A stretch of DNA of 63,228 nt, counting the filler, from Octopus bimaculoides (lineage: Eukaryota): NCBI RefSeq assembly GCF_001194135.2. It is 5 parts of 5 records of this genome, joined end to end, with 100 filler letters (N's around TTAATTAATTAA, not from the genome) between each part and the next. Parts side by side here need not be neighbours in the genome. Positions count along the whole stretch, not along the records: positions 1 to 30,334 come from NC_068983.1; 4 more parts are not named here. One strand, given 5' to 3'. The notes below the pieces were generated by a model, which did not search any database, had not been told where the DNA came from, and worked only from the letters and a program-made list of their open reading frames with translations. Position numbers and translations under genes: made by a program. Of the stretch, positions 24,801 to 25,243 are shown in pieces. Positions within the stretch are counted from its first letter, which is position 1; every line of letters starts with the position of its first letter.

Positions 24801-25243
24801 TTTTTCACGGAGTATATCAGTACCGAAAAAGAGGAAATGTACCTAGGGTCATTCGGAACTTCATATATTCTTGATAAACACGACTACCATGGCAATGTTA
24901 TTTCCTTGTACTCAGCCTATAATCGCCTATTGTTAGTAGGTTTATTAAACCACATCATTCATGCAGCTCACCAAGACATTTTGCTTTGTAATGAATTATA
25001 GTTACTAAGTTTGTCGTTTCCCCTAATATTTTTTGTTTCTCTATTGCAGAATGCTATATCAACCAAGATTGTGCTATTGCCAAAGGATGTAACTGTATAT
25101 CGATGGACAAACAGCCTTGCTTACAAAAGTGTTCCCATTACGCTTTATGTACATATGGCACTTATACAGTATCTTCCTGTGGCTACGGTAGAAGGTATGA
25201 ACCTCGTTTAAGAAGATGCATTCCTGGACGTTGTCCATATTAA
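18512..25243 (+). CDS. tyr: Secreted tyrosinase-like type-3 copper protein with C-terminal chitin-binding domain; join(18512..18862,19711..19823,22290..23761,25050..25243), 709 aa
   Basis: All introns GT-AG with matching phases (0,2,1); total 2130 nt = 710 codons. Signal peptide; RIRKEYRLLSERER; CuA LH...AHAGPTFLLWHR; TIPFWD; CuB HNSMH...DPMFWLVH; Thr-rich linker; Cys-rich terminal domain. Confidence 0.9.
19711..19823 (+). CDS. Tyrosinase coding exon 2 (CuA site), absent from the ORF track
   Basis: Acceptor TTGTTTCACTTACAG|; SMSPNIYDAIAFLHTGETARNAHAGPTFLLWHRIYLK-AT|GTAAGC, phase 2. Confidence 0.9.
20776..22056 (+). mobile_element. Full-length degenerate mariner element in a tyrosinase intron
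   Basis: TIRs TA-GGTGGTATCAAAAAGTTC / GAAGCTTTTGATACCACCTCG-TA; transposase motifs ITGDENWVYG, LHDEN, HPPYSPDLAPADFHLFPK; frameshifts. Confidence 0.9.
22290..23761 (+). CDS. Tyrosinase coding exon 3 (CuB, Cys-rich middle domain, Thr-rich linker)
   Basis: Acceptor TTTTTTATTTTAG|G completes ATG; 490 open codons; donor A|GTAAGT, phase 1. Confidence 0.92.
24258..24366 (+). mobile_element. SINE family C head (tRNA-like + CORE-like)
   Basis: A box TGGTCTAGTGG, B box GTTCGATTCC, then GTTGTGTCCCTAAGCAAAACACTTTATC. Confidence 0.65.
24585..24682 (+). repeat. About 100-bp direct repeat, copy 1 (copy 2 at 25746-25846)
   Basis: AATTAAGTAAAAATGTTGCTTTC...GATAAAATATTTAGTTGTTATA occurs twice, differing by one substitution and a small indel. 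Confidence 0.9.
25050..25243 (+). CDS. Tyrosinase terminal exon: chitin-binding type-2 (CBM14/peritrophin-A-like) domain
   Basis: Acceptor TTTTGTTTCTCTATTGCAG|, phase-compatible; (K)CYINQDCAIAKGCNCISMDKQPCLQKCSHYALCTYGTYTVSSCGYGRRYEPRLRRCIPGRCPY*; spacing C-x5-C-x9-C-x12-C-x4-C with aromatic residues in CBM14-like positions. Confidence 0.8.

Follow-up and report, generated by a model that had tools for sequence, protein, structure and literature searches.

An exon-4-encoded CBM14-type module at the C-terminus of an Octopus bimaculoides tyrosinase and its putative role as a chitin anchor

The window analysed here is a 63,228-nucleotide stretch of Octopus bimaculoides DNA (filler included), and on its forward strand it contains a gene for a predicted secreted (alpha-type) tyrosinase with four coding exons, at 18512-18862, 19711-19823, 22290-23761 and 25050-25243, giving a gene span of 18512-25243. 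When joined, these form an in-frame coding sequence of 2130 nt with the stop codon (2127 nt coding), which specifies a protein of 709 amino acids, and all three introns have GT-AG borders. The first exon (18512..18862, +) starts with ATG and encodes a putative signal peptide, MNRLYFAFVILLNIVYA/NS, in which MNR, LYFAFVILLNIVYA and NS were judged by eye to resemble an n-region, an h-region and a cleavage site, followed by an N-terminal region with four Cys residues and the opening of the tyrosinase domain (RKEYRLLSERERYDF...KQDT). This exon ends in phase 0 at the donor ACG/gtaaga, and its product is identical to residues 1-117 of the public model XP_014788111.1. In contrast, the acceptor of a long open reading frame (ORF) further downstream, at 22289/22290, requires two upstream bases, and this gap is filled by the second exon (19711..19823, +), which is 113 nt in length, has the acceptor cacttacag/AG and the donor AAAAT/gtaagc, and carries the CuA site with H131, H140 and H149 (FLH...NAH...LWHR). 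The third exon (22290..23761, +) encodes the CuB site with H258, H262 and H285, the remainder of the type-3 copper domain, a middle domain and a Thr-rich linker, and ends in phase 1 at AAAA/gtaagt, with the long ORF itself (22291-23769) crossing this consensus donor at 23761/23762. Searching the window with the 709-residue product using tblastn returned the four exon blocks and nothing else, which rules out a second tyrosinase paralogue in the window.

The fourth and terminal coding exon (25050..25243, +) is 194 bases long and follows intron 3 (23762..25049, +), a GT...AG intron of 1288 nt with the donor CCTAAAA/gtaagt at 23761/23762 and the acceptor tttctctattgcag/AA at 25049/25050. As the donor at 23761 leaves a single codon base, and A+AA gives Lys, exons 3 and 4 join in phase (phase 1). 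Exon 4 completes Lys646 and then encodes 63 residues with 10 Cys, read in the frame that starts at 25052 as CYINQDCAIAKGCNCISMDKQPCLQKCSHYALCTYGTYTVSSCGYGRRYEPRLRRCIPGRCPY, before the TAA stop codon at 25241-25243; including the split Lys, its share of the protein is 64 residues. Like exon 2, it does not appear in the mechanical ORF list, in this case because the frame has no early start codon. Orthologous proteins align over the intron 3 junction with no insertion, which rules out extra exons inside this intron, while a candidate polyadenylation signal, AATAAA (25660..25665, +), called from sequence only, is positioned 417 nt past the stop. The original prediction had proposed an in-phase exon of 64 residues and 10 Cys at 25050-25243 that is absent from the ORF track, and this is borne out by the splice sites, the in-frame coding sequence and the match to XP_014788111.1.

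An exact-sequence look-up showed that the 709-residue model is letter for letter XP_014788111.1, named in RefSeq as 'putative tyrosinase-like protein tyr-1 [Octopus bimaculoides]', and UniProt A0A0L8FPZ6. Likewise, the gene called on the chromosome record CM046603.1 (GCA_001194135.2), which is base-for-base identical to the window across the 12.7 kb compared, spans exactly window positions 18512-25243, and models of 704-711 residues that include the C-terminal module exist for O. vulgaris, O. sinensis (four isoforms) and Argonauta hians (two linked paralogues). Exon 4 is already in RefSeq and UniProt and is therefore not hidden, as had been thought, nor does automated annotation truncate the gene in these models; the only truncated version is P0006, a bare ORF call of 491 residues from an ENA assembly, which reads through the donor. 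Genome annotation is thus unaffected by our finding, and no mention of the accession numbers was found in the literature.

The read-through does provide some basis for a different view of exon 4, in which the Cys-rich frame would have arisen by chance as an ORF, or be a pseudo-exon that is never used, with the protein ending at the read-through stop at 23767-23769 (...PKSK-stop), since this stop is only 8 nt past the donor and the P0006 call terminates there. We consider this extremely unlikely, as conservation of the ten Cys and the main aromatic residues extends to bivalves, the tyrosinase and module are encoded in one ORF of a clam mRNA contig, and the module is present in each of the four O. 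sinensis isoforms and in the RefSeq model of O. bimaculoides. Furthermore, with translated TG/CA microsatellites set aside, the exon 4 frame is the only one in 30 kb, across six frames, with at least 10 Cys per 64 residues. We conclude that 25050-25243 is the genuine last exon of the tyrosinase gene.

From its N-terminus, the 709-residue product is formed of a putative signal peptide, the type-3 copper domain, a ~256-residue Cys-rich middle domain, the Thr-rich linker and a C-terminal module, which agrees with the architecture that had been predicted. The protein has a PF00264 entry, and a family profile compared with the PDB gave matches to molluscan haemocyanin functional units and bacterial tyrosinases that span residues ~77-353, with E-values down to 2e-100; all six His ligands of the type-3 copper site are present. 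The middle domain (residues ~341-596) is conserved and contains 15 Cys and several N-glycosylation sequons, and gave no PDB sequence match with the family profile. It is followed by a Thr/Ser-rich, mucin-like linker, NNNTNATTTASPSTRATTTTATTTTTTPSTTASTTTR (23620..23730, +; residues 599-635), with Ser and Thr making up 52% of residues 597-646, and the length of this linker differs between orthologues and between the O. sinensis isoforms. An AF2 model of the full-length protein, built from a six-sequence alignment, had a pLDDT of 35.6.

Six of the ten Cys residues in the module, numbered along the module, are spaced C15-x11-C27-x5-C33-x9-C43-x12-C56-x4-C61, with extra Cys at C1, C7, C13 and C23. 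Peritrophin-A domains follow the register C1-x(11-24)-C2-x5-C3-x(9-19)-C4-x(10-14)-C5-x(4-14)-C6, and this six-Cys CBM14 register is present in the module, although its x4 spacing between the fifth and sixth canonical Cys lies at the lower limit of the family's range and outside the 5-9 of the molluscan protein EHEP, whose pattern is CX15CX5CX9CX12CX5-9C (PMC10619976). C13, with x13 spacing, provides an alternative to C15 as the first canonical Cys, and hhalign places this position at C15. The module can be divided into an N-terminal extension (25052..25093, +), which carries the extra C1, C7 and C13, and a CBM14/peritrophin-A-type core from C15 to C61 (25094..25234, +), which has the fourth extra residue, C23, within its span and conserved Y30, G36, aromatic residue 38, aromatic residue 49 and P51. 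All four extra Cys are invariant across the aligned cephalopod and bivalve orthologues. In the canonical pairing scheme, CBM14 disulfides connect C1-C3, C2-C6 and C4-C5 (PMC10619976), and three arcid-clam (Tegillarca-type) sequences, P0007, P0095 and P0157, lack both C27 (C2) and C61 (C6), a joint loss that is expected for the canonical C2-C6 disulfide.

We compared the module with known structures using both sequence and predicted fold. The module peptide alone matched only EHEP in the PDB (8IN3, '25 kDa polyphenol-binding protein'), with an E-value of 3.8e-5 when summed over the three EHEP repeats, while a five-sequence module profile matched EHEP (E 2.9e-4) and Blo t 12's chitin-binding domain (E 0.027) and no others; E-values for single domains were weak (0.03-2). 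An AF2 model of the module from the five-sequence alignment had a pLDDT of 89.5, with predicted strands at residues 20-22, 29-34, 37-42, 47-50 and 55-58 in the 3+2 layout of the CBM14 fold. When this model was submitted to Foldseek, all of the top ten PDB matches were CBM14 structures, comprising EHEP, Blo t 12, human chitotriosidase (CHIT1) and its isolated CBM14 domain, Avr4, Der p 23 and tachycitin; query TM-scores were 0.47-0.63 and E-values 0.02-1.4, as is usual for domains of ~60 residues, and unrelated folds came next with a probability of 0.25 or below.

An exhaustive HMM search of 1.84 billion representative sequences identified 330 proteins at E ≤0.001, with the best of these having 6-36 matched stretches each, and among the proteins listed the number of cores was often equal to the number of matched stretches. 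Outside the octopus tyrosinase cluster, the six-Cys peritrophin-A pattern was present in 145 of the 149 listed matches and the exact Cx5Cx9Cx12C core in 143, and their source names included insect mucin-like proteins, 'chondroitin proteoglycan 2' and 'Chitin-binding type-2 domain-containing protein'. In the PDB, one of these matches (P0031) in turn matched EHEP, the CBM14 modules of chitinases and squid 'chitin binding beak protein 3', while a mussel protein named chitin-binding type-2 (P0026) had no PDB sequence match at E ≤0.001. When the octopus module was aligned by hhalign with repeats from two peritrophin-type proteins, the probability was 94.9% and the E-value 4.5e-8. A word-indexed homologue search with the short module alignment returned zero candidates, and a rerun of the full-length homologue search with the alignment yielded no further sequences. 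Precomputed Pfam entries for the 709-residue protein and every orthologue consist of PF00264 with no CBM_14 on record, and the module is probably negative for PF01607 at standard thresholds. The Cys spacing and aromatic positions anticipated in the original prediction are therefore seen in the register and in the conserved Y30 and aromatic residues 38 and 49, and the profile or structural match to CBM14 that it had set as a test was obtained through the PDB profile, Foldseek, the HMM search and hhalign. These models and alignments support the module being a divergent CBM14-fold domain of 63 residues, with five predicted disulfides, two of which would lie in an N-terminal extension.

All ten Cys residues are retained in O. 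vulgaris, O. sinensis, the two Argonauta paralogues and a unionid mussel orthologue, and the aromatic positions Y30, Y/F38 and Y/F49 are kept from octopus to mussel. Full-length orthologues with the module were identified in O. vulgaris (88% identity), O. sinensis, Argonauta hians (two), Tegillarca granosa and Sinanodonta woodiana. The T. granosa sequence (P0007, 733 residues) derives from a 2.5-kb RNA-seq contig with tyrosinase and module in a single continuous ORF, while that of S. woodiana (P0158) has 964 residues and all ten Cys, and in both bivalves the tyrosinase domain, middle domain and module co-occur. Since this whole architecture is common to Octopus, Argonauta and two bivalves, the fusion is older than the cephalopod-bivalve split. 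When the mussel module alone was compared with the PDB, its best matches were all of CBM14 type and included squid beak protein 3, although weakly, and a genomic fragment of the T. granosa orthologue is named 'Chitin-binding type-2 domain-containing protein' in UniRef. It had also been stated as established that some bivalve tyrosinases carry chitin-binding domains; the module is indeed present in our orthologue alignments and such domains in database names, but we found no paper that states outright that a molluscan tyrosinase carries a ChtBD2 domain, and this claim consequently rests on those names and on the alignments of this analysis.

By analogy with chitinases, which have CBM14 modules behind Ser/Thr linkers and are among the Foldseek and P0031 matches, we favour, with moderate confidence, a model in which the CBM14-fold module of this tyrosinase docks on chitin and localises tanning there. 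The signal peptide would direct the tyrosinase into the secretory pathway, and the di-copper domain would then oxidise tyrosyl/catechol groups to o-quinones and in this way cross-link matrix proteins. The Thr-rich linker may act as a flexible stalk and is probably O-glycosylated, while the C-terminal module would dock the enzyme on chitin fibres, with tanning then taking place on the chitin-protein scaffold.

However, having a CBM14 fold is no guarantee that a module binds chitin, as EHEP and Der p 23 are both non-binders and chitin-contact residues are not conserved across the family (PMC10619976), and the module might instead have phenolic or catecholic substrates, or tanned proteins, as its ligands, or mediate protein-protein contacts. 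It would then recruit substrate or buffer polyphenols, as with Aplysia EHEP and phlorotannin. EHEP, which binds tannic acid, is the best match to the module in both sequence and structure; the module is also basic (pI 8.9) and Tyr-rich, with aromatic residues at 7 of 63 positions, and a polyphenol binder attached to a polyphenol oxidase would make functional sense. Nonetheless, most characterised CBM14 modules that are tethered to enzymes via Ser/Thr linkers are chitin anchors, and the ligand pocket of EHEP is located between three domains whereas the octopus protein has one. As the canonical aromatic residues are also kept from octopus to mussel, and the clam orthologue carries its chitin-binding type-2 label in UniRef, we regard phenolic or protein binding in place of chitin as a real but rather unlikely possibility. 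More speculative still, and in our judgement doubtful, is that an ancient conchiferan tethered tanning enzyme, made up of tyrosinase, the 256-residue Cys-rich domain, a mucin-like stalk and a CBM14 variant with ten Cys, was retained in shell-less octopuses and redeployed on sucker cuticle or stylets, or that an EHEP-like module binds polyphenols or quinones and feeds or shields the oxidase.

With regard to where such a chitin-docked enzyme might be used, cephalopod ink glands make melanin with type-3 copper tyrosinases, and with its six His ligands intact the octopus protein might likewise be a melanogenic enzyme of ink or skin pigment, whose module serves folding, stability or packaging only. 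The three-domain architecture is nonetheless also found in bivalves, which have no ink sac, and a linker with a carbohydrate-binding-type module would be better suited to an enzyme directed to a matrix than to one in melanosomes. Furthermore, the argonaut orthologues, which lie in a tandem cluster and bear traces of gene conversion, are reported to be highly expressed in arms and mantle and to group with conchiferan shell-matrix tyrosinases (PMC9635652). High arm and mantle expression is likewise described in a companion preprint, in which tyrosinase was undetected in the argonaut eggcase proteome (bioRxiv 10.1101/2021.07.10.451900). This expression argues against an enzyme of the ink sac or ink melanin, and gives no pointer to beak or radula. 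Taken with the architecture, it makes a melanogenic role improbable, and by analogy with argonauts the sucker cuticle, stylets or other cuticle of arm and mantle seem more likely sites of use than the ink sac, with beak and radula being possible and a role in sclerotisation plausible.

These findings indicate that a subfamily of cephalopod and bivalve tyrosinases has a CBM14-type module that is overlooked by Pfam-based records. If the module binds chitin, this would explain in simple molecular terms what confines quinone tanning to chitin scaffolds such as periostracum or shell matrix, sucker lining, stylets and beak, and biomimetic chitin composites could draw on such a compact pairing of enzyme and anchor. 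Binding of phenolics would instead make the module the second instance, following EHEP, of molluscs repurposing the CBM14 fold.

The reference family for the module is CBM14/peritrophin-A (PF01607, SM00494, PS50940), with structures that include CHIT1 (5HBF/6SO0), tachycitin (1DQC), Blo t 12 (2MFK) and Avr4 (4Z4A). In common with this family, the octopus module has the Cx5Cx9Cx12C core with flanking first and sixth Cys, the predicted 3+2 strands and the conserved aromatic residues, and it departs from it in the invariant C1, C7, C13 and C23, in having only x4 between the last two canonical Cys and in its lack of a Pfam record. As with the CBM14 modules of chitinases, it is C-terminal, in what is predicted to be a secreted enzyme, and behind a Ser/Thr-rich linker; however, it is joined to a tyrosinase and not a glycosidase, and chitin binding here is putative. 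The RefSeq name 'tyrosinase-like protein tyr-1' comes from Caenorhabditis elegans TYR-1/TYR-3, in which a secreted type-3 copper tyrosinase domain is combined with Cys-rich C-terminal additions, ShK-type modules. No match to an ShK-type module was found in our analyses of the octopus protein, and the name is a best-hit transfer and does not reflect a common architecture.

Among molluscan proteins, the top match is EHEP (Eisenia hydrolysis-enhancing protein) from Aplysia kurodai (8IN3/8IN6; E 3.8e-5, TM-score 0.63), whose peritrophin-A domains (PADs) share the core Cys spacing of the octopus module. EHEP is formed of three PADs with no enzyme domain, and it binds polyphenol between these domains and does not bind chitin (PMC10619976), whereas the octopus protein has just one such domain, with additional predicted disulfides. 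Squid chitin-binding beak protein 3 (7BWE) provides a cephalopod example of a chitin-binding-type Cys module and was matched by P0031 and, weakly, by the mussel module, with no direct significant match from the octopus module; unlike the octopus enzyme, it is a structural beak protein without an oxidase domain. The cephalopod literature consulted treats tyrosinase as a single-domain enzyme (bioRxiv 10.1101/2021.07.10.451900) and leaves a CBM14-type module unmentioned. Finally, molluscan alpha-type shell-matrix tyrosinases share the type-3 copper domain and have a signal peptide, as predicted in octopus, and fall in the same orthologous group as the octopus gene (PMC9635652), and while the octopus differs from the owners of these enzymes in having no external shell, the two Argonauta tandem-cluster proteins, P0004 and P0005, contain the middle domain and C-terminal module just as in the octopus.

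The second exon of the tyrosinase gene (19711-19823, + strand) was absent from the mechanical ORF call of the window, and its 113 nt encode the CuA copper site (H131, H140 and H149). When this exon is left out, the tyrosinase domain loses half of its copper ligands, and exon 1 no longer joins exon 3 in phase. Between the copper domain and the Thr-rich linker, we also identified a conserved domain of 256 amino acids with 15 Cys (residues ~341-596, nt ~22846-23613), which is common to the bivalve orthologues and gave no match in a PDB sequence search; a role for it as a latency cap over the active site is conceivable. 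The linker that follows varies in length from species to species, and comparison of O. sinensis isoform X4 (P0010, 693 aa) with X1/X2 (710 aa) showed a 17-residue deletion within it. These differences between isoforms and species indicate that the stalk is variable in length while the C-terminal module is fixed.

In the alignment of orthologues (A1), columns ~270-285 read EAHSHAVNIW in the Tegillarca granosa clam sequence (P0007/P0013), compared with EFMHNSMHVAI in octopus and EFHHSAVHIW in the mussel, and therefore one or two CuB histidines appear to be displaced or lost in the clam. The clam protein, which may be a catalytically altered paralogue, has also lost the C27-C61 pair of cysteines from its C-terminal module.

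Within intron 2 we detected a degenerate mariner-type transposase remnant (20941-21924, + strand) whose ORF is broken up over several frames. One 172-aa piece of it matched the Mos1 transposase in a PDB search (E 5.8e-6), and the remnant explains why the kilobase at 21-22 kb is GC-rich. Upstream of the gene there is a GC-rich block (~8000-16000; GC 0.41-0.50, compared with ~0.36 elsewhere) that looks like a decayed retroelement. Its + strand carries long fragments of ORFs (for example 11125-11712, 13339-13755 and one from 13665 onward), and the block also has runs of homopolymeric codons and is interrupted by an N gap (13822-14483). Further N runs mark assembly gaps at 1518-1617, 10858-10867, 16876-16975, 27898-28660 and 29107-29206. 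(TG)n/(CA)n and (TA)n microsatellites were found at 19270-19370, 26100-26170 and other sites; the microsatellites of the window yield false Cys-rich frames when translated (CVCVCV...), and these translations had to be left out of the chance test for Cys-rich frames.

Two of the Octopus vulgaris models, P0003 (764 aa) and P0012 (916 aa), each contain two tyrosinase domains, with the middle and C-terminal domains present as broken copies. In both cases the annotation seems to have fused tandem paralogues that lie on one chromosome, and this suggests that the octopus tyrosinase genes form a tandem cluster, as in Argonauta. The linked Argonauta hians paralogues P0004 and P0005 have an overall identity of only ~60%, but over a long part of the middle domain (residues ~415-500) their sequences are nearly identical. 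Gene conversion has been reported in the tyrosinase cluster of A. argo (PMC9635652), and the near-identical stretch in A. hians agrees with this.
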